Assembly: GCA_907165135.1 (NCBI GenBank)
Contig: OU015569.1
Coordinates: 5,642,001-5,706,000 of the forward strand
Length of the DNA stretch: 64,000 nucleotides
Reading direction: 5' to 3'
From: Oikopleura dioica
Lineage: Eukaryota; Animalia; Chordata
Every line of letters starts with the position of its first letter. The first letter of the stretch is position 1. Shown one piece after another: positions 1,988 to 56,236 of the stretch. The notes beneath the pieces are model-generated. The model searched no databases. It was not told the origin of the DNA and saw only the letters and a list, made by a program, of their open reading frames with translations. Both the position numbers and the translations under genes were made by a program.

Positions 1988-8708
<6,721 letters not shown>

Positions 8709-15188: not shown

Positions 15189-15514
15189 GGGCTACCCCAA
15201 ATTTCTGGAGTTTGAAAAATTTGGAGTTCTTTTTCTGGAAGTTGTTAAAAATTTCGTAGGTTCTGTTTGGAGCAACGAAATTTCTAATCGATTTTTAAGG
15301 GTGTTAAGGGCCTCCCGGCCCCTCCAAACCCCGGCAAAAATGTGGGTCCGGGCCCGTTCTTTCTTTTGCCGGGGTCAGATACCCTTAATTATTACTCTAA
15401 CACCCTTAAAAATCGATTTGAAATTTCGTTGCTCCAAACAGAACCTACGAAATTTTTAACAACTTCCAGAAAAAAAACTCCAAATTTTTCAAACTCCAGA
15501 AAATAGTAGCAGCC
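15189..15514. mobile_element. 326-bp MITE with about 110-bp TIRs and 9-bp TSD (Mutator-like)
   Basis: TSD aagtttacc at 15180-15188 and 15515-15523; near-perfect inverted repeat tttctggagtttgaaaaatttggag...aagggtgtta versus its complement; the terminal about 13 bp are only partly complementary. Confidence 0.85.
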
Positions 15515-29197: not shown

Positions 29198-29508
29198 TAC
29201 AAAAGTATGAGATTTTTGGGTGAAAGAGAAAAGTGAATAATGTGCCTGACGGTTCTAAGACTCCTTATATATAGCCAGCTTGAATTATCATGTCCGACTC
29301 AAGTTTGACGCGATATCTGTTGATTGAACCGTCCTGATCACAAGCAGAATTGAACTTTCATTTTAGTATGCTCCCTAGAGATATCAATGATATGATATAA
29401 TTCATATTGCGTATTCAATGACTCTTTTTTATAGAACTATTTACTCCCCCTGCAAATTCAAAAGCACTACTCAAATTGCGATGTCTTTAGAATTAAGAGT
29501 CTACTTAA

Positions 29509-30180
29509 GGCTAGGGTGGTCGATTTGGCCCAAAGCAGGGCTCATAAACTCTGGACTTGTGAATGCCAGAGTACCCTATAATAGCTTTTAATAAAGATCT
29601 ATCCTTGATCTTCTGAATTACAGAAGCTTTTTCCGTCATCTCAAGAAAAAAGCCACTTCCGGTGCCTTCAAAGTTGGCATCTCGGCCAAAATCGCGAAAA
29701 TAGCCCATCTTCAGGGCTCCAAAACTCCAAAGTTTGCATTATGGTCCTATCAGTTCTTACTATTTTTAGATTTCTTAGACCCTAATCTTAAAATTTACAG
29801 AAGGTTTTTCTTATTTGATAGTTTTTTCTTTAGAAAATTTTTCAATAAACCAAGGTACCTTTTTTTTGACTATTCATTCCTATAAAATCCCCTGCGGGCA
29901 TAGCCTAGACGCCACAAGCCCTACCCTAAATGAATGTCCTTAGTATTAGCTTTCCAAAAATGTATCATATGCCACTATTGTAAAGGTTTGAAATTTCAAA
30001 ATATTTGGTTCACTTTCAAAATACACTAATTTTCTGCAGCTTTAGTCGCAATTTCCGGGAGTTCGAGTAGAGATAGCCAAAAAGTGCATAAGGAGTTTTT
30101 TGCTCCAAATTTTCTGAGGAAGCCAAAAATGCAGGTCAAAAAAAGAACCTGAGACTTGGCCAAAATCGACCACCCTAGCC
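29509..30180. mobile_element. 672-bp MITE with about 25-bp TIRs (GGCTAGGGTGGTCGATTT) and TTAA TSD
   Basis: TTAA at 29505-29508 and 30181-30184; terminal inverted repeats ggctagggtggtcgattt / aaatcgaccaccctagcc. Confidence 0.88.
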
Positions 30181-30274
30181 TTAAAGATTCTCCCACTAGA
30201 ATTCATCGCAATTTGAGAAAATTATTGTCGAAACTGGCTGTATTACAAGTTTGCTACATGTTTTAAAAGCAGAT

Positions 30275-31117: not shown

Positions 31118-33511
31118 TTAAAGCGTTCCTTGGCTAAAAAGGGTTGAAAAAGATACTCGTGAGAAACGGACCTGATATTTTCTATAGACGAGTTAATTAA
31201 AAAAGGAATTATAGATCGAATTGGGATCGTTCCAAGCAAACACGAAAAGAATATTTTCTAAAAAATAAAAGGGATGATGAATGAACGATTCGAATTTTCT
31301 TACCTCAATGGACTTTTTATGAATTTGTTTGCACAAGTTTATTCGCATAAATATCTTCTGTTGGCGCTGGTTTGAAATCAACGAAGAGATTTTCGCTGTC
31401 GTATCATTTAAAAGTTTTTCAATCTTTTGATCAGCGCCTTCACGAGTTCCCGTGACTAGTGGGTTGAGAAAAAGAAGGCATCGACAAAGCGCATATTCGA
31501 CAGGGCCTAGTTCCAGATCTTGGATATACAGCACGGTTCTTTCGATCAAGTCAAGATCTTGAATAAGCTCGTCTTCAAATAGTCGGAATCTTGAGCAAGT
31601 TATGTTTAGTGAATTCTCTCAATTTTTTACCTAAGGGTATCGGAAATACTTTTCATCTCGTCCTTGGATATACACTGAGCTATTCCGATGAGAAAAAGCT
31701 CGCTCCATGTGTGCAGCATAAATGTCACTTGATGGTCGACCTATAAGTAGGAGTAATAGATAAAGGCCTCGCTGGGCAATTACCTCTATAGAATGATAGC
31801 TAGAAAAGTTTTTAATCCATTTGGCAGACAGGAATAGCATTCGCGAGGCTATTTCGTAGCTTCGCTGCTCATCTGCCTCTGGCCCGTCTGGCTTCTCAAA
31901 CTCAAATTTAAGGATGCAGTCGGGAAGAATCTCTGACTGCTCGACAGCGGAGCTTCTCTCGGGCTCAGTGTCTTTCGCGATCAGACGGCTGATATTCGAC
32001 AGGAGATTGGACGTAGCGTCGAGACTTGAAGGAGTAGAACTGGTGTCAGACGAAGAGTTGGTGGATGATTGTGCACGACCTTTGTTTTGCGACACGGCTT
32101 GTGTCTGATTTCGAATCTGCGTTAAATTTCGAAAGTTAGACAACGATGGCAAATTGAAGACGGCGTTCAAAACGCTCTGATTAGTACTCGTCACTGGGGC
32201 AGTGGACGTGCTGAAAAAAGTCAGGAAGGTAATCATATTTCAGTTGTACCTAAGGCTTGGTTGCGCAGGTCGGGTAAATTGCACAGGACTTTGGCTAGTG
32301 GAAGTTCTTGCAGCTGCATTGGAAGAATTGTTTGTTGCTAGGCTTGTTGTCAGAGAAGGAAGAGCGAGCATTGTCGCCTTCTCTGAATTGAGGTTTACGA
32401 TGGACTCAAGCGAGATTGCATTTCCCGTCCCAGACTGATTCAAAGCGCTGGATCCATTCTCCGAAAAGCTAAGTGGAAGGGAGCGGGTGATGTTTGGTTT
32501 CAACGGTCGTATTGGACCTCGCTCATTCTGGACAGAATCAGCTCGCATCCCAACAGAAACACACTTGAAAAATCTACATGCCTTTAATCGGTTCTTAGCT
32601 GAATATATTCTTTACAAACGATTCTTTTTAATCCTTCATTTACGAGAACGATTCCTGGCAGCGATTTCTCTGTAATTTGGTTACTGGACAGTCCGAGTTC
32701 CAGCGACAGGTGTAATTGAGTTTTTTACGAATAGATCTCTAAAAACATTTGGTATTCAATATTCGAAACTCACAGGTTCAAAAACCTTGAAGAATCCTTT
32801 GCATCCCTCACACGATTTTACTCCATAATGTCTTCCACTAGCACGATCCCCACAGACTTCGCATCGTTCATAAAAGTAATCGTTCTCTTTGAATTTTTGA
32901 TCCAGCTGGATTGCTAAAGGTCCGTTGTCCATTTTCTTGTATTTAAAGCCACTGCCTGTATTCGTAATTAGCGGCCTTGTAATTTGAGTTACAAGTAGTT
33001 TTCTTATTTTCTATTTGATATCACAATTCAACTCATTCCTGACGTGCTGTGCTGGGGCTTCCTGTGATTCTTGCTTCAGGTCGAGCTGCTGAGGTTGGAA
33101 AGATAACGAGTCATCTTGCTCGGTTTTGATGTTTTCTACCGGCTGTGTTTCCATTTCACGCTTTAGTTCGCCATTCGGATGTGCGTTTTCAGTCTCCATC
33201 ATAGCCTGTAATAATAGTAAGTTGCGTATATATTGCGGTATAATAGTAAGTCGTGACTTTCTTGTGATTGAAATTTTGATTGAAAAATAATAAATTCATA
33301 ATTTCATAAAAAATGGCTAGCTTACCAGAAGTGGCGCTATGGGACTGGTCTTGGATTGTGGCGGGGCTTCTCTTAGGGTCAAAGTTCTACTGTCGAAGGG
33401 TTGGAGGCATCGGAAGTCGCGAGTCGCGTGTTTCGGGTTGAAGTTAACTCGTTGAACTCTACTGGCGTTGTGTCCGGTGGCGTTGGTGAAATGGTGCACG
33501 GCGCCAATCAA
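31118..33511 (-). CDS. NR2C (TR2/TR4): Nuclear receptor NR2C (TR2/TR4-like)
   Basis: [57 protein letters not shown]|[21 protein letters not shown]; [27 protein letters not shown] and C-terminal [20 protein letters not shown] (TR4 has LFFTGLIGNVSIDSIIPYI). Ends approximate. Confidence 0.9.
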
Positions 33512-38600: not shown

Positions 38601-41600
38601 TTATTTTGAGTTGCATCCACTGTCCTCGCAGCATTGATAGCACCAGGACCAGTTTCGAGATCGATGGTTAGAGCAGGTTTTCTTTGATTCCCTTTCCTGC
38701 ATAAGACAAGCGTCTTTCTTCTTGCAGCCAGCTGTGAGTAAGATTATATTTTCGCCATTCACCAGCTAATTAGAGTTCATTTACAGTGTAAAAATACTTC
38801 GTTAGGAAAATTATCGATTTTAAAAAAGCTCAATTATGCAAGTCTATTTATATAATGAACTCGCGCCTGAGATCGGTATTCAGTGAAGCAAATGGAATCT
38901 GGTGAACAATGGACTTTTCAGTGCACTCAGAAATGTCGCGCGCATTATCGCATGTGACACACCAGGCGGCGAGCGTTACTTCGATGCTGCCAATTCTACT
39001 CGCTTCCACACGTTTATTTTGAGAACGGGCCTGAGACAATACTTTCCCGTGGTTAAATTGCGGTTCAAGGATTACTCTCTCAGACACAGCATTCAACGAT
39101 TCGTTCTGCTCTGTCAAATTCGATGGGGACTCACCGATGTTAGGGAGCAGTCTGTCCGCAACATTTAGTGGAGACGTGGTAGGCACAGCTGAGATAATTG
39201 ATTCATGAGTAGTAGAAAACTTACTAGACTGAATTGGTAAAGTTAGCGTCGGTTTTATTTTTTCCGTCATATTTTTTCTTGCTATTCTGCTTGTGTTTGG
39301 AACCGTCGTACTCATAATTCTCTTTCTTTTTGAAGTAGTGAAAGTTGCTGTCGTTGTGGCTGACTTTGTTGTTGTCGTATTCATAGTTGTAGTCATAGTC
39401 GTGAATTTTGTCGTCGGTATTGTTGTAGTTGTCGTAGAAGCGGTCGTTGTAGTAGTCGTCGTAGACGTAGTTGACGTAGTCGTCGTAGTGGTGGTGGTCG
39501 TAGTCGTCGTAGTTGTTGTTGTTGTCGTAGTACTGGTTTTGGTTGTTGTTGTACTTGTTGTACTTGTTGTTGTACTTGTTGTTGTACTTGTTGTTGTTGT
39601 CGTAGTACTGGTTGTGGTTGTTGTTGTACTTGTTGTACTTGTTGTTGTACTTGTTGTTGTTGTCGTAGTACTGGTTGTGGTTGTTGTTGTACTTGTTGTA
39701 CTTGTTGTTGTACTTGTTGTTGTACTTGTTGTTGTTGTCGTAGTACTGGTTGTGGTTGTTGTTGTACTTGTTGTACTTTTTGTTGTATTTGTTGTTGTTG
39801 TCGTAGTACTGGTTGTGGTTGTTGTTGTACTTGTTGTACTTGTTGTTGTACTTGTTGTTGTACTTGTTGTTGTTATCGTAGTACTGGTTGTGGTTGTTGT
39901 GGTTGTTGTTGTACTTGTTGTTGTACTTGTCGTAGTTGTCGTAGTACTGGTTGTGGTTGTTGTTGTGGTTGTTGTTGTACTTGTTGTTGTACTTGTTGTT
40001 GTACTTGTTGTACTTGTTGTTGTACTTGTTGTTGTACTTGTTGTTGTTGTCGTAGTACTGGTTGTGGTTGTTGTTGTACTTGATCTTGTACTTGTTGTTG
40101 TAATTGTTGTTGTACTTGTTGTTGTACTTGTTGTTGTTGTTGTAGTACTGGTTGTGGTTGTTGTTGTACTTGTTGTACTTGTTGTTGTACTTGTCGTAGT
40201 TGTCGTAGTACTGGTTGTGGTTGTTGTTGTACTTGTTGTTGTGGTTGTTGTTGTACTTGTTGTTGTACTTGTCGTAGTTGTCGTAGTACTGGTTGTGGTT
40301 GTTGTCGTAGTACTGGTTGTGGTTGTTGTTGTACTTGTTGTACTTGTTGTTGTACTTGTTGTTGTACTTGTTGTTGTACTTGTTGTTGTTGTCGTAGTAC
40401 TGGTTGTGGTTGTTGTTGTACTTGTTGTACTTGTTGTTGTACTTGTTGTTGTTGTCGTAGTACTGGTTGTGGTTGTTGTTGTACTTGTTGTACTTGTTGT
40501 TGTACTTGTTGTTGTACTTGTTGTTGTTGTCGTAGTACTGGTTGTGGTTGTTGTTGTACTTGTTGTACTTTTTGTTGTATTTGTTGTTGTTGTCGTAGTA
40601 CTGGTTGTGGTTGTTGTTGTACTTGTTGTACTTGTTGTTGTACTTGTTGTTGTACTTGTTGTTGTTATCGTAGTACTGGTTGTGGTTGTTGTGGTTGTTG
40701 TTGTACTTGTTGTTGTACTTGTCGTAGTTGTCGTAGTACTGGTTGTGGTTGTTGTTGTGGTTGTTGTTGTACTTGTTGTTGTACTTGTTGTTGTACTTGT
40801 TGTACTTGTTGTTGTACTTGTTGTTGTACTTGTTGTTGTTGTCGTAGTACTGGTTGTGGTTGTTGTTGTACTTGATCTTGTACTTGTTGTTGTAATTGTT
40901 GTTGTACTTGTTGTTGTACTTGTTGTTGTTGTCGTAGTACTGGTTGTGGTTGTTGTTGTACTTGTTGTACTTGTTGTTGTACTTGTCGTAGTTGTCGTAG
41001 TACTGGTTGTGGTTGTTGTTGTACTTGTTGTTGTGGTTGTTGTTGTACTTGTTGTTGTACTTGTCGTAGTTGTCGTAGTACTGGTTGTGGTTGTTGTCGT
41101 AGTACTGGTTGTGGTTGTTGTTGTACTTGTTGTACTTGTTGTTGTACTTGTTGTTGTACTTGTTGTTGTACTTGTTGTTGTTGTCGTAGTACTGGTTGTG
41201 GTTGTTGTTGTACTTGTTGTTGTACTTGTTGTTGTACTTGTTGTTGTACTTGTTGTTGTACTTGTTGTTGAACTTGTTGTTTTACTTGTTGTTGTACTTG
41301 TTGTTGTACTTGTTGTTGTACTTGTTGTTGTTGTCGTAGTACTGGTTGTGGTTGTTGTTGTACTTGTTGTACTTGTTGTTGTACTTGTTGTTGTACTTGT
41401 TGTTGTACTTGTTGTTGTTGTCGTAGTACTGGTTGTGGTTGTTGTTGTACTTGTTGTTGTACTTGTTGTACTTGTTGTTGTACTTGTCGTAGTTGTAGTA
41501 GCTGTCGAGGTGGTTATTGCCGTAGTTGTATATGTTGTCGTGTCCGGGAACAGAGTCGTTGCTTCAAATGGCACTGTTGTTTCATAAATTGTCGTCATAT

Positions 41601-44600
41601 CCACTGTGATAGGTGTTGGCGTTTCTGTTGGTATTTGATCTTTGTCCTTCTTAGATTTTTTGCTCTTTTTACTCTTATTTTTACTAGTTGATAAACCACC
41701 ATCATCTTTCATCATCTGTCCAATCGAAGATTCTTCAAATCGCACGCCTACCGGAGGCGATTGCTCTTCATATTTGCAACTTTCTGATTTAGAATCAGCT
41801 TTGCAAAAGCATCTCTTTCTAGGTTCTCTTTCTTACTCTGTTGTCATTATTCTTCAAGATTTTTGACAACTGAATATTTATCTCTAGTTCTTATGTAAAA
41901 TCGAGCCCGTTCCTGGTGGTCACTGTCGAAACAGCAGCCACTAAGTGAGCAATCAAATGATTCGAACTCTTGTAACATGCCAGTTGTTTCCGAAAAGTTT
42001 CCGCAAGCTCTGTTTGTCTCACAAAAATCTAGCCAAGGTTTCGCTTGCCATGACCGTTCGGCTCCTCCCGTTAATGCAGCTAGTTCTTTGAACGAGCTTC
42101 CAGTTCCAGTGTCGTCGAATTCATTGTCAAAGTATAAGCTGTTTGATTCCTCCTCTTCTTCTTCCATATCATAAAAGATATTAAGCCAATCGAAATTGAG
42201 TGCTCGACGGTTTCTGCATTTCTCTGTTTGTTTAGTATTCGAATGGATTAACTTGCAGTCTTTTGATAGCATCAGCTCTACTAGTTCATCGTAGAGTGCA
42301 TCCGCAGCACTTGTTGGTCGTGAATAGCCTTTCAAGAGTTAGTTTCTTTCGTTGAAGGTTATCGCTGTATTATTGCCATTAACCGCGATTAATTCAACCC
42401 TTTCCTAAGAATGTGTAAACTTTGCATCCTCCATGGTTGACTGGAACCTTTTTCAGCATCGAAATCAGCTTCTGAAGAATAACAACGACGTCTATCTCGC
42501 ATACTTCATCAAAATTCTCTAGTTCCGATTTAGCATCTTCAAATTTGTAGGTATTAAATGGCTTTCTGACAATATTGTCCAAACAAAAATGAGCATTTTT
42601 GGTTCCTTCGTCTCGTATTCTCAATGGAACCGAGCTGAGAACGATGATCATTTTTCTTGTTGTGCACTCAATCAATGACATCGGTGAGAACTTCATAAAA
42701 CTGTAAATGCTCCAGTCTACTTGGGACGAACTTGGACAAGTTGTTTTTGTCTTCGAGAAACCAATCACTTTTGTTCCACCTTTCACTCGCTGCCGTAGCT
42801 CCCAAAATTGACCTGGGTTCCAGCTAAAAAACATTTATCACTGAAATATTCTCAAACTAAAACCTTATCATCATTCCTTCTTGTGACTCGTACACATTGT
42901 ATTCAGATCTGGCTGTGCTCTTCGAAAATTCAAAGTCCTTAATTTTGAAATTGTCACAGCATTGTGCTTGACAACTCTCTTCATCAGAACCATCATCGCA
43001 GTCCATTCGCCCGTCACAAACTTTTTCCATTAAAATACACTGCGAGCTCTGCCGGCATTTCCAAGAACTCGTTCCTTGATTTTGGCAGGTTTCGCAGTGA
43101 TATTCGTCTGACCCATCAGGGCAATCATTACGCAGGTTCTTTCTATTTTTACAGCGTTGAGTTAATTTGAAAAAACTAAACTAAAACAATTTTTACTACA
43201 TTTGGCTACATATAAAATATAGACAATAGTAACGTAACTATAAGCAGAACCCTGACTGAAGCCGTCACATAGCCTACTTTCCCAGAAAATATCGATTCCA
43301 TTATCACATATTTTTCTTGTTGAATCTCCTCCGCAGTAATCACCACAGCCGTACATTTCACAGATCCTCAAAATATCCATGACAGACGGACGAACGCGCT
43401 GTTCTACGATAGGTTCCAAAGTATTTTTCTTGACGATCGTTGGGTTGCTTTTGATTGGCGCTAAAAATATATTGGTTCACTTAGGTACGGATGATCTAGG
43501 GTAAGGGTAAGAGTTATGGACCATAACCATAACTTATAGTTGATACATAGAATTAATAATATGCTATCTGTATAGAATACCTTTTGAAAATGAGTATCCG
43601 CCGTAGTGCATGACAGAGTTAAAGTCATATTCACCATAAAAAGTCATCAGACCGTCGGGCGCTTTATTGAAATTTCCAGCACAGGAGCCTTTGCCAGATG
43701 TTAAACAAGTCGAACTGACATTTTCGAGGAAGATATCGACATAATCATCTCGGTCGGATCTTTGGTGCTCGTGTATAAATCCCAGCGCATGAATTAGCTC
43801 ATGTGCGGCCTTGCCTAAGTTTTTGCATCCAGGGCCAAGAGAAATGGGCTGTTCTCCGCCAGTTTTCCCAACGTAGCTGTAGCAACCGCCTCTATCAGTA
43901 GGGTTATAAGATGAAAATTTGGCCCATTTTTCTAGCTTAGTTTAGGGGTCTAATGATACAGTTTTAGAAAGCCCGGAAGCTGAGCTTTTATTTGGGCACA
44001 ATATCAAGTGATCTAGTTCACGCAAGGCAATTTATAGGACCTGAAAGTCCGAATTAGGCACTAGAACTCTTTAATTGATTTTTTGGGTGCTGGGGTTCAC
44101 TCTAAATGGCTCAAAAGTCACCGTAAAACGTTATTCTTCCAAAAGTCGAGTTTCTAGCGCCTACTTACGAACCATTTCGAGTGAACCTCGGCGCCCAAAA
44201 ATCAACGGAACAGTTCAATCGCCTATTTCGGAACTTCAGGTCCCATAAATTGCCTTGCGGGGATGACGCACACCACTTGATATTGTGCCCAAATGAGAGC
44301 TCAGCTTCTAGGCTTTCTAAAACTCTATCATAAGACCCCTAGACTATGCTAGAAAAATGGGCCAAATGTTCATCTTATAACCCTATCTATCAGCAATAGA
44401 TAAATAATCGCTTGGCCGTCTTTTTGGGCTTGTAAGTTCTTGAAAGTCGATGCAAGTTTCGGACGATATGAGGTCCATTGCTGCTCGTACAGCGCCTCGA
44501 TAAATAATAGGTTCGAAATTGTTTTTGGTTAGGTTTAGCCTTGAAACTTTAAAAACTAAGGATAAGAGCCTCTGTATAACTTGGGCAGGTAAAAAATTTC

Positions 44601-47004
44601 CCTACTACAAAAGTACGCACTTAGAACCTTGTCTGTTTAGGGAAATTAAAATCCATTTCATAGAAAATAGTGTGTCTCGGATCGCGCTCGTTCTCGATCC
44701 AGGGTTTGACCACGGCTTTCTGTTTTTCGGACTTATCCATTAGCATCCATCTATCGTGATCGAAAGCTTCCCAAAACAATTTCTGTGCATCGGTGAATTT
44801 CATATCGTCCCCATCTAAAAGTTATATTTGAAACAAGGCACGTTCAATATTTGCTCGTAATCGTGTGAAATTAGCCATGCAGTAAAATTCAACAAAGGCA
44901 CCAACCCAAATTTTCGTCAAATTTTGCTAAAAATTTCAAATTTTAGAGAATTATGAGGATTTTCACCACTTTGGCCGGCGGATGTTTTGGTTTGAGCAAC
45001 TGGGGAAGTCATGATAAGTTTTATGACTGGATAGGAATCGGATTTTCTCATATAAATTTAGGCTGAGAATTTATTTAAAAGCTATCATTACTTGTGCAGG
45101 AGCATCCATTAAAAGAATATGAAAGGCCCTACATCCATGCAGCAGCGAAATATCCAAATGGGGATGCGATTTGTCGCGCGAAAACAACCGTTGTCAATGA
45201 TGACATTTTTTTGGCGGGAATTGTTAAAAATAATAAGTGCATTTTTGGATGGAATACGAAAGAAGAAACTAGCAATTTTGACCTTCTTGTACCGAATTGT
45301 GGTGATGGTAGCGAGCTCAGCTGGTTCGAAGAGAGGGATTTAGAAAGTGTGGGTGATGAAGTAAGAGTTGAGGTGAACACGCCTGGATTCTCGATTGGAA
45401 TCTGCGAGTTCAACGGCAATAATGGCTGGAAACGAGGCAAAGGGTGTATGTGGAAAACACCCGAAGCTGGTGCACAGGAAAATAACTACGAGACAAATCA
45501 TAAGATGCTCACAATTGTCGGTTGTAAGCTTCCGTCTATTTCCTTCTATGATCGAGCGCAATTCATGAAAGAAAACGAAGCTGATACTTTGATTTATGAA
45601 AATCTTCCAAGTGATGAGGCTGTCTTCATCGGTGATAACTACTCGCCCAAGTATCATACCAGGTAAAGTCTACCCTTTCTCCTATCAGTATAACCGCGAT
45701 TTATTAGACATATGAAAAAGGAAGACTCCTCTGTTCACTGGTCAACAAGTCTGTTAAAAGTTCCGTTGTGGCATGATGTTGAGGCCAGTTTCAACTTGCT
45801 GAGCTATGGCAAAGAAGACGCTGATTGGGAAGCCAAATTCGTCTGGTACAAAGGTACTCTTGAAATCGTTATAAACGATAAATAGTAATCTAGAAAGTAG
45901 CAACCCAGAACTAAAGGAGTCCGTTAAATATGAAGTCGTGAAGATTGTGCCTATTGAACGGTGAGTAAGGTCTTTGAAATCAGTACTATCCTCGTTAATT
46001 TCAAAAAGTCGGTCTTTATATTTATAAATAACAAATAAAGACTAGAAATGACACCGGAAAAATATTTAGCGAGATCAACTTTGACGTCACGAGTCCTCAG
46101 AAGATATCACTTTTTGGAAAGTACGAGTCCGAATTCGTCGCCTTAGAAGTAAAACAAACTTTGCGCGCGGATGGCAGCCGCAAACAACTTCAGTAAGGGT
46201 GTGTCAGCTATTCAAAGGCAAAGAAGACTGTTTTGGAGTAGCGAGGAAATAACGAAACTACGTAAATGTTACGTCACTAGTACAGTTTTCATCTTTGACA
46301 TCCCCAAACTCAGTATCCAAAAGTGTCAAACTTTAAAATGAACTCAGCCGCGCAAGAATGCTTTCCCCTTGGCCCAAGTCCATCGGCAAAAGTTATTTGC
46401 GATGACCATCAAAATTGCAGAACCGTTTGCAGAAGAAGATTTACAATGAAGGGGAGCTTAAAAAAGCTTCGATGCGAGGCCTGGTTCAAGAAATTCGTAT
46501 TGTCAATAGTGCACGCTGTAAACGTAAAGTGCCTAGGTGCCTACAAGTTGGTCGTATTTCTGACAGATCCGAATTAATTCCTTACAGGATTATGAGCGAG
46601 AAGTAACTTCACCCTAGCTTTAAAAAATCGTAGGTACTCTGCAACATATGAACCGCAGAAAGAATGGATTTTGGATGAGCGACTCTGATCAGCCGTTGAA
46701 TGAATTATACATGTACTTTATGCTCAATTATTTATGTATGCCGAACAATGTACCTGTTCAAGAACTCGTGAGAAAGTACAAAGGAAAGTTTTACTGCGAA
46801 ATTCTCGATTTAAATGATGAAATATTAATTTTTGCAAAACAAGTAAAGAATCCCACGACAACCTCGTTGAACCAAAAGACCCTTTTGAATAGACTTATTT
46901 AATCTCTTAGACTGTAATAAAATCTTTGCAACCGAGTTGTACTTACAATCACCGCGTACTCGCTCTATCGCGAAAAGCGAACACACCAGGAGCTGTACGT
47001 TCAT
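38601..47004 (-). CDS. Large secreted multidomain protein: signal - astacin metalloprotease - 2x LDLa - unknown region - trefoil-like - Thr-rich mucin - three-finger/Ly6-like Cys domain (house/oikosin-like candidate)
   Basis: Astacin HELIHALGFIHEHQRSDRDD and SVMHY (about 43580-43890); LDLa CPDGSDE and CILMEKVCDGRMDCDDGSDEESC; NRACG...CSLSGCCFD...RCFC; about 700 aa T/S; WCVTC...GCKKKDAC...CCEDSGCN* (stop 38601). Signal exon 46947-47004 joins in phase 1 at 44814. Single-gene continuity and exon 1 are inferred; a MITE interrupts one exon. Confidence 0.75.
39420..41510 (-). repeat. Coding Thr/Ser low-complexity tandem repeat (ACA/ACT/AGT codons) with a 792-bp higher-order duplication
   Basis: Diagnostic variants recur exactly 792 bp apart: TNTTKS (39776/40568) and TRSS (40082/40874). 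Confidence 0.95.
43899..44385. mobile_element. 487-bp hAT-type MITE (TAGGG...CCCTA, 8-bp TSD) inserted in an astacin coding exon
   Basis: TSD tctatcag at 43891-43898 and 44386-44393; about 215-bp imperfect TIRs; the flanks rejoin to ...SDYLSIADR|GGCYSYVG. Confidence 0.92.
44953..46196 (+). CDS. Probably secreted protein with two DM9/DUF3421-like repeats and a beta-rich C-terminus; probably nested in intron 1 of the astacin gene
   Basis: ORF 45094-45666 ICRAKTT...AGIVKNNKCIFGWNTKEE..FDLLV plus a second similar unit; downstream short-intron exons splice in phase to a stop at 46196; short leader MRIFTTLAGGCFG. The first intron junction is unresolved and the family call is from pattern recognition only. 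Confidence 0.6.
46338..46688 (+). CDS. Possible small Cys-containing protein of unknown function
   Basis: MNSAAQECFP...C...C...C with two 40-45-nt GT-AG intron candidates; the reading frame across them is ambiguous. Confidence 0.3.
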
Positions 47005-54500: not shown

Positions 54501-55110
54501 CTTTTCACTCTCTGAAAAACGCCACATGGGTCCTCCTTTGTCCATGTATTTGCGTCAACTCCTGTAGCACTCACCTAGGTTAGAAGCTCTTCTTTACTTT
54601 TGTTATTTGCTCTCACTCATGTACTCGAGTGCAGTTTAAAATGTGGCTTACAGGAAAGTACCGATCGGTCGCTCATTTGTGAATAATTCACTTTTCATTG
54701 AGCAACTTTCCCTGAATAATTAATCGTCGGCCACTCATTCCTCCTTTTTTTCTGAAAAGAATTTCTGATCAGCCAAGGCCGATATTCCCTCTTTTCATTG
54801 AGATCCTTCCTCGCTGCCGTTAATTATTCACTCTGGTACTTTTGTTTTCCTGCTTAATGTAACTTTCAATAGGAATCATAGAGGAGCATCAATCGATCAG
54901 ATTCGGGAACCCCAGTGTTTGTTGCGGCCGTTTCGCTTTTTATGAGCTGCCTTATTAAATAGCACATTCGATCTTGTCGTGCTAGTTTATGAATGCCAAG
55001 CACGGAAACTCCTTCCCATCTAATGCCCGAAACTTGAATGGAGCGAAACTGAAACTGACTTTTTGAAACGGACTTTTTGAATCGAGCGGAAGCTATGACA
55101 CAGCGCTTAA

Positions 55111-55866
55111 GGGTAAAACATGAAATCGGCGCGGCGCGGCCGCCCGTTCAGCGCCCCGCCGTGACCTATTTTTCAGAGGCCCGTCAAATCTGAACGGAGA
55201 GAGTATTTTTCATAATTTTTTTTGCGTTAAGATTATCAAAGCCTGCACTTTCATCAGGACAATTTTGAAAAGAATCGTGAGCGTAGAAGTAAGAAAAAAT
55301 GGGATGACTTGCTCAAAGTCTATCTCCTCCCACAATTTTCGTCCGATTTTTCCCAAATTAAAACCATTTTGTAGAGCTCCGTCTACTCTACAAATTCGTA
55401 GACTAACTTTTTTATTTTTAATTATATAGATTTTAGACGGAGTTTTGAAATGAGCGCTCTCGCTCCGCGGCCGCCTTTTTCACGCGCTGCGCTGCTGCGA
55501 ATGCCTTTTTTCGAGGGAGCGCTCATTTCCAAGCTGCGTCTAAAAATCTATAAAATTTAAATTTGAAAAGCTAGTCTACGAATTTGTAGAGTAGACGGAG
55601 CTCTACAAAATGGTTTTAATTTGGGAAAAATCGGACGAAAATTGTGGGAGGAGATAGACTTTGAGCAAGTCATCCCATTTTTTCTTACTTCTACGCTCAC
55701 GATTCTTTTCAAAATTGTCCTGATGAAAGTGCAGGCTTTGATAATCTTAACGCAAAAAAAATTATGAAAAATACTCTCTCCGTTCAGATTTGACGGGCCT
55801 CTGAAAAATAGGTCACGGCGGGGCGCTGAACGGGCGGCCGCGGCGCGCCGATTTCATGTTTTACCC
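55111..55866. mobile_element. 756-bp palindromic MITE with about 300-bp near-perfect TIRs (GGGTAAAAC) and TTAA TSD
   Basis: TTAA at 55107-55110 and 55867-55870; 55111-about 55405 is almost exactly complementary to about 55572-55866. Confidence 0.93.
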
Positions 55867-56236
55867 TTAATGACGTCTGGGACTCTCGATTCTCGACGGG
55901 AGCTGTATTTGTCTCCAACAGCAGTCACACCTGCAGCACCCTTAGCTAGACACTTAAGCAGATCTGAAAATCACACGGATGCTGCTTTTCTAACTATCAG
56001 ACTTACAGAACTAGTCTGTCTGGAACATTACCTACAGTAGTAGTTGTTGGTCTTCTATCTTTGCTTGAAATTTGCACAGCCCTTTTTCATAGGCCAGCGC
56101 TGAATACGACGTAGTACCGAAAAATGAAAGTTAAGAAATGGAGCTAAATCATCACTTTAATTACAAAAATATTTATTAGTTGTGCAAGTAATATCTGGGC
56201 AGTTTTTATAATTAGGTTAATTTTAAATAAATTTCT

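Follow-up and report, generated by a model that had tools for sequence, protein, structure and literature searches.

When the maize hAT transposons Ds and Ac insert into exons, splice sites in their termini allow imprecise removal, and the leaky alleles that result have been demonstrated by cDNA. Introners, families of DNA transposons that create introns, have been described (Huff 2016; Gozashti 2022, PMC9860276), and in Fritillaria borealis non-canonical introns derive from miniature inverted-repeat transposable elements (MITEs), as far as the accounts of Henriet et al. 2019 given in PMC13326754 and PMC11282704 relate. AG/AT introns are tied in that species to extra U2AF paralogues, whereas 3' AG dominates in O. 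dioica (PMC13326754). Transposon insertion is already listed among the sources of Oikopleura introns (PMC3443670), and O. dioica is known to use GA donors with AG upstream and A downstream, giving the consensus AG^GAA (Frey and Pucker 2020, PMC7072748; here and below a caret marks the splice boundary). Even so, the origin of new introns is a long-standing question, and good transposon-born cases in animals are few. The 64,000 nucleotides of Oikopleura dioica DNA considered here (the window) hold, on the minus strand, an X-linked astacin-LDLa-mucin gene whose catalytic exon is split by a non-autonomous hAT-type MITE. Two independent haplotypes carry this insertion, orthologous loci in two other lineages are empty, and no GT-AG junction near the element ends restores an open frame, so that the allele probably, if by little better than an even chance, encodes no working protease.

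The window derives from the Okinawan line OKI2018_I69, specifically from its X-specific region (XSR), the assembly sequence (GCA_907165135.1, OU015569.1) being 100% identical to window 34953–56196; a neighbouring open reading frame (ORF) matches CAG5097018.1 ('OKI2018_I69.XSR.g14893', Oikopleura dioica) at all of 183 residues. An origin in a Fritillaria-type genome was considered and rejected on the strength of this identity and of the GT-AG introns that flank the interrupted exon. Since the source of this assembly was single males (PMC8008620), the sequenced animal was hemizygous for the region and had this allele alone. As a first-pass annotation of the same DNA had proposed, a 487-bp TAGGG...CCCTA element flanked by an 8-bp duplication sits in the astacin catalytic exon, and the minus strand reads ...ATT GCT GAT AGA, TAGGG...CCCTA, CTGATAGA GGC GGT TGC across the insertion. 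Its assignment to the hAT superfamily, likewise proposed, agrees with the perfect 8-bp duplication and with terminal inverted repeats (TIRs) that begin YARNG. No transposase ORF is present in the 487 bp, the longest ORF being 57 aa with no homologue found, and no second copy of the family occurs within the 64-kb window; a search for further copies via the spurious ORFs of the element gave no match, and neither did Rfam anywhere in the window. The inverted arms comprise paired blocks of 112 nt at 92% and of 66 and 39 nt at 82%, some 217 nt per arm, close to the approximately 215 bp first estimated. The sense transcript is predicted to fold into one end-to-end hairpin of -308.7 kcal/mol, as against -134 for shuffled sequences (z = -27), a fold that would bring the two ends together as had been anticipated.

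The sequences flanking the element share one frame, reading ...PSDYLSIADR upstream and GGCYSYVGKTGG...HELIHALGFIHE...SVMHY downstream, with GGCYSYVG at the junction. The downstream half matches positions 56–151 of the Pfam Astacin profile (PF01400, E 9.5e-32) and the upstream half positions 20–48, the latter at E 0.0096 and 16 bits, below Pfam's own cut-off of 22.5 bits, so that the insertion splits the domain at about profile position 50–55. Together with the PF01400 match, the zinc site HExxHxxGxxHE (HELIHALGFIHE) and the Met-turn SVMHY identify the product as a member of the Astacin (M12A) family. The insertion lies 29 codons before HExxH, somewhat further than the approximately 25 codons first counted. 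Because the element and one copy of the duplication amount to 495 nt, or 165 codons, the frame is kept across the insertion and only stops inside the element matter; the earliest of these, the TAG in AGA TAG, is made up of its very first three bases (Table 1).

Every donor/acceptor pair near the element ends was listed and scored for frame and stops. The listing agrees with the first-pass annotation in yielding no GT-AG pair in this region that keeps the frame and also avoids a stop: any donor located at the first base of the element or beyond it retains the TAG, including the GT at element position 5, which leaves AGA TAG. Paired with the GAG^ acceptor (43890), this GT (44381) in fact gives an in-frame message whose sole defect is the retained stop. 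TAG^, situated 2 nt before GAG^, is the first acceptor after the pyrimidine run and has the preferred pyrimidine at -3, and its use breaks the frame, as had been foreseen for the nearer acceptor. Rescue of the frame requires a donor upstream of the TAG. One such option is the proposed GA(44387)-AG(43890) junction, for which the original arithmetic is correct (498 nt removed, giving ADSGC), although the resulting protein has a shortened form of the DRGGC motif that is conserved in closer relatives, and the donor lies 5–6 nt upstream of the better-looking TAG^GG and TAGG^GT. Other options are GA or GC donors combined with AGs inside the element, adding 13–14 residues; an exact 495-nt removal in non-G registers, either AG...AT or AT...AG of the duplication; and an AT...AC removal of 489 nt, adding two codons.

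How plausible such junctions are depends on the donors that the host accepts. Those verified in the window are AAG^GTTC, AAG^GTAT, CAG^GGTT and CAG^GAAT. The last belongs to a nuclear-receptor gene that also has a 47-nt GT-AG intron, and only removal of CAG^GAATCG...AAAG^GCA restores the second zinc finger, C-x5-C-x9-C-x2-C, of its product; the GA donor that had been cited at 32582–32654 as evidence for such usage is thus real. The OKI2018_I69 genome is one that uses both GA-AG and GG-AG introns. Among splice sites of host type at the element, then, the frame-keeping one is GA-AG (498 nt) in a poor context, whereas the donors in the best context keep the TAG.

Table 1. Features of the interrupted astacin gene, its element and the splice sites discussed; positions are those of the window unless another sequence is named
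Feature	Position	Strand	Remark
Non-autonomous hAT-type MITE, TAGGG...CCCTA	43899..44385	-	near-complete palindrome, 487 bp
Target-site duplication, upstream copy	44386..44393	-	CTGATAGA; last codons of exon 2 upstream half
Target-site duplication, downstream copy	43891..43898	-	CTGATAGA
In-frame TAG stop (AGA TAG)	44383..44385	-	from the first three bases of the element
Astacin exon 1	44628..44803	-	ATG at 44803, also start of NCBI gene range
Intron 1, GT-AG, 88 nt	44540..44627	-	same position in L001 and L002
Astacin exon 2, upstream half	44386..44539	-	translation and Pfam match
Astacin exon 2, downstream half	43581..43890	-	with HELIHALGFIHE and SVMHY Met-turn; translation and Pfam match
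Intron 2, GT-AG, 120 nt	43461..43580	-	same position in L001 and L002
Exon 3	43252..43460	-	end of astacin domain and start of LDLa-like part
Intron 3, GG-AG	43139..43251	-	CAG^GGTTCT...GAAAG^AAC
TIR-encoded candidate donors	44380..44382	-	TAG^GG (44382) and TAGG^GT (44381), both downstream of the in-frame TAG
Proposed GA donor	44386..44387	-	ATA^GATAGG; context unlike AG^GAA
Two candidate acceptors, 2 nt apart	43890..43893	-	TAG^ would end the intron at 43892, GAG^ at 43890
GA-AG intron, 73 nt, nuclear-receptor gene	32582..32654	-	AG^GAA context
Exon-3 MITE of orthologues	L002:2161-2333; L047:723-882; L051; L048		homologous to window about 43385

Comparison with orthologous loci, suggested at the outset as a check for empty sites, establishes the direction of the change. 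A Logan contig (L001) bearing an orthologue 94% identical and with synteny kept has an empty site with a single 8-mer, CGGACAGA, and so does the Bergen-type orthologue, CTGATCGA, represented by L002 and by L051 (OdB3 scaffold FN653049.1, which encodes CBY09861.1). These empty sites mean that the Okinawan state is an insertion and is derived. In contrast, a metagenome scaffold from TARA Oceans (L045) shares both the element and its duplication with the window at this very site; the element ends are identical to those in the window over 130 and 95 nt, only the centre of the palindrome differing, by deletions. In five DNA data sets the shares of 31-mers of window 43870–44415 that are present are 0.31–0.80, three of them at 0.43–0.53, where the L045 form would hold 0.50; this suggests that the insertion is widespread, though other copies of the family could add to these counts. 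A search for orthologous loci in the JGI (Joint Genome Institute) metagenomes returned only relatives of at most 52% identity and short local matches. To judge from these comparisons, the allele is derived in the Okinawa lineage, is common there and is viable in the hemizygous state.

Divergence between the window and the TARA scaffold is unevenly distributed. In the stretch that runs from exon 1 through exon 2 and takes in the MITE arms, 6 of 954 positions differ (0.6%), as against 11 of 221 (5%) in intron 2 and exon 3 (contrast P 3.6e-5), which indicates that a recombination break lies near 43580 and that the haplotype surrounding the element is young. In coding sequence the two haplotypes differ by five synonymous and two conservative changes, with no indels; taken alone these reject neutrality (P 0.006–0.025), and this 5:2 count was at one stage read as purifying selection since the insertion. 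That claim was withdrawn: four of the seven changes fall in the 5%-divergent block beyond the break and, with 0.6% divergence near the element and 5% beyond 43580, most changes predate the insertion or are unlinked to it. The young block around the element holds only two synonymous changes and one non-synonymous change, too few for a test to have power. As a separate observation, positions 1–227 of the scaffold (L045:1-227, past window 43359, within exon 3 after ...ATCTGTG) diverge completely from the window and had no match in any sequence compared; they represent either another insertion, carried by that haplotype, or the chimeric end of a scaffold.

The same gene has accommodated another transposon elsewhere. 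A different hAT-like MITE lies inside coding exon 3 in the Bergen-type sequences (L002, L051) and in a further lineage (L047, L048), and is not present in the Okinawan and L001 sequences. It measures 152–165 bp and runs CAGGGTT...CCCTG with TIRs of about 20 nt; its 8-bp duplication, CTTCAGTT, survives unaltered in L047 and has decayed in L002, and the two versions of the element in these sequences share 81% identity, interrupted by many indels. The coding sequence that flanks it, compared over 825 nt between the same pair, shows a synonymous divergence (dS) of 0.46 and a non-synonymous divergence (dN) of 0.033 (dN/dS 0.07, P 3e-24 against neutrality). An old element in flanks so constrained implies that the insertion predates the L002/L047 split, that the gene stayed functional and that the MITE must leave the mRNA; on this evidence it is clearly a transposon-born intron in the other lineages. 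In all four sequences, joining CAGG^GT (GT at element position 5) to the AG in the second duplication (CTTCAG^TT) preserves the frame with a gain of two codons, and two further donor/acceptor pairs are also conserved in frame. Frame and conservation thus make it most likely that the exon-3 MITE is spliced via a donor built into its yAGGGTT terminus. In O. dioica, then, hAT MITEs are able to turn into introns and have done so. An identical donor occupies the corresponding position of the Okinawan element, where the stub TAGG, in this phase, gives AGA TAG.

Intron 3 of the gene offers a possible echo of this process, in that its GG donor (CAG^GGTTCT, window 43250–43256) shares the string CAGGGTT with the terminus of the exon-3 MITE, and it might descend from a similar element. 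The acceptor of this intron varies: in the Bergen type (L002 at about 2520, and L051) it is AA in place of AG, ATATAA^AAC (homologous to window 43139–43140), whereas L047 has ATATAG^AAC and the window GAAAG^AAC. Four more palindromic or TIR-bearing elements occur in the window, at 55107–55870, 15190–15514, 29505–30184 and 6957–8381; two have TTAA at both ends (TTAAGGG..., TTAAGGC...), a third shows an 8–9-bp duplication, AAGTTTAC(C), and the fourth is a nested composite. They were sought as exon test cases within the window, and none of the four sits in an open reading frame.

Gene models and transcripts add little to this picture. The NCBI model at the locus (1351 aa, window 38759–44803) starts at exon 1 and has no Astacin or LDLa match on record. 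Its terminal exon at 38759 (38759–38777) has an implausible six codons, and it leaves out a conserved last exon (...CKKKDACLMQ...CCEDSGCNSK; 38603–38750) that completes the cysteine-rich C-terminal domain of the Bergen protein; the model is an unreliable guide to the true gene structure. The Bergen model from OdB3, CBY09861.1, passes from the catalytic exon directly to the mucin part. Among indexed RNA runs, none contains the exons of the gene, and four runs that were mapped (X4–X6 and X1) have zero depth over 41900–46000; they come from another lineage and are hence uninformative on splicing. Runs X4–X6 cover only 46071–46226, the last exon of the neighbouring gene, at 90–95% identity, so that, though under the same species label, they derive from another cryptic O. 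dioica lineage.

With confidence only slightly above even, we favour the view that this is a common protease-null allele, produced by out-of-phase insertion of an otherwise intron-competent element in a dispensable member of the family. A non-autonomous hAT would have inserted in the catalytic exon in the Okinawa lineage after its split from the two lineages with empty sites. Its terminus would bring the donor-like TAG^GG and TAGG^GT, of the kind used at intron 3 (CAG^GGTT), and the duplicated target would provide AG acceptors. As the stub keeps the TAG in frame, retention of the element and splicing from its own sites would have the same effect, a frame that ends at ...SIADR, 29 codons short of the zinc-binding HExxH, with a protease-null allele the most likely outcome and the transcripts likely targets of decay. 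Given an allele common or fixed in the lineage, the protease part of the gene appears dispensable there. Several observations weigh against this account. All exons of the astacin gene besides the interrupted one are open, a hAT MITE in a coding exon of this very gene has become an intron elsewhere, and, the population of the species being very large, an allele of such frequency could equally be a harmless insertion that is spliced out. In favour of the null reading, when L002 serves as outgroup the ratio of non-synonymous to synonymous changes is 13:19 on the window branch, which includes a change of W to Y in the GCWSYVG motif, and 4:16 on the L001 branch; this hints at relaxed constraint on the window branch, but the difference is weak and not significant (Fisher P 0.14). 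Moreover, the junctions chosen by the spliceosome and the loss of function itself are what we infer from sequence rather than from RNA of the Okinawa lineage.

A rival account is that splicing at a junction that starts upstream of the TAG takes the element out as a new non-canonical intron, leaving a message for a working protease. None of the candidate junctions of 498, 495 and 489 nt shifts the frame or leaves a stop, GA-AG and GG-AG introns are spliced in this genome, the predicted hairpin joins the element ends, and an allele that is common and viable in hemizygotes, in a gene with a precedent for the step from MITE to intron, would be expected on this account too. The two insertion-bearing haplotypes with their 5:2 coding differences once spoke for it as well, but this count loses force with only the three changes left near the element. 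Its other difficulties lie in the sites themselves: the GA donor lacks the AG^GAA context and is rivalled by TAG^GG and TAGG^GT just downstream, the GAG^ acceptor stands behind TAG^, and the AG/AT type that the exact register would call for is a trait of F. borealis, O. dioica being dominated by 3' AG (PMC13326754). Taking all registers together, productive removal thus strikes us as unlikely, and the GA(44387)-AG(43890) route taken singly, which was the mechanism first advanced and which suffers in addition from the shortened DRGGC, as improbable. Hardly better is the prospect that the broken exon is skipped, or that transcription and translation start downstream, giving a protease-less mucin/three-finger product in which only the enzyme module is lost. 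The intact long Thr-rich exon agrees with such a product, and so do the NCBI model, which begins at exon 1 and has no Astacin or LDLa match, and the Bergen model with its direct passage to the mucin part; both models are automatic, however, the Okinawan one with its implausible last exon, and a skip confined to exon 2, 464 nt once the element is discounted, would put the codons that follow out of frame. Misassembly, or a somatic or laboratory-line allele of purely private occurrence, might be suspected as the source of the insertion, given the single family copy in the window and the fact that palindromes can be assembly errors, but such an origin is refuted by the independent TARA scaffold with its identical ends and duplication and by the presence of the 31-mers in several DNA data sets; we consider it extremely improbable. 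Of the alternatives first offered, a young null allele or transposon-driven intron gain, the null allele is therefore the one retained, at the modest confidence given above, whereas its description as young and rare does not hold for an allele found in a hemizygous animal and again in a wild TARA scaffold that is 0.6% divergent near the element.

Set beside the GA-AG introns described for both O. dioica and Eurytemora affinis (PMC7072748), the locus shares with them a genome that truly uses GA donors (32582–32654), and departs from them in that the known donors have the context AG^GAA, whereas the proposed one is ATA^GAT and has stronger competing sites beside it. With the introns of F. borealis it has in common a larvacean host and a MITE with TIRs and target duplication in coding sequence, and the duplication would permit the exact AG...AT register (GAT^AG...GAT^AG), the second commonest class in that species. 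Unlike the F. borealis genome, however, that of O. dioica is not dominated by non-GT/AG introns but has mostly GT-AG and GV-AG ones (here GT-AG, GT-AG and GG-AG in the neighbouring introns), U2AF beta paralogues are not reported for it, and the triplet on both sides of the element is GAT, not YAY, which places the locus outside the AG/AT type. The parallel with maize Ds/Ac is a hAT in an exon, with donors in its terminus and an outcome set by the phase of insertion. The maize system is a plant one with cDNA, whereas the Oikopleura case, in this comparison as in that with F. borealis, is read from DNA only.

Like introners, the Okinawan element is a non-autonomous DNA transposon with TIRs and a target-site duplication, and its candidate splice sites are part element and part duplication; some introner families add or drop a few codons, and the exon-3 MITE of the orthologues behaves in the same way. 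Unlike them, its element-encoded donor leaves an in-frame stop. One may tentatively suppose, as a doubtful but possible generalization, that hAT-type MITE families of O. dioica are chordate introners, in which the yAGGGTT terminus would serve as 5' splice site and the duplication as AG, insertions being tolerated in the right phase, and that the astacin copy is either an out-of-phase casualty or one rescued by a non-canonical junction, GA-AG or other. If true, this would reveal how much latitude the spliceosome of O. dioica has. The single gene of a laboratory chordate described here presents a matched pair, an old hAT MITE turned intron in some lineages and a younger one, in another lineage, with an in-frame stop. 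Productive removal of the latter in Okinawan animals would set the limits of non-canonical splicing in O. dioica, while failure to remove it productively would make the locus a clear illustration of what introner activity costs and of the gene loss for which the species is known.

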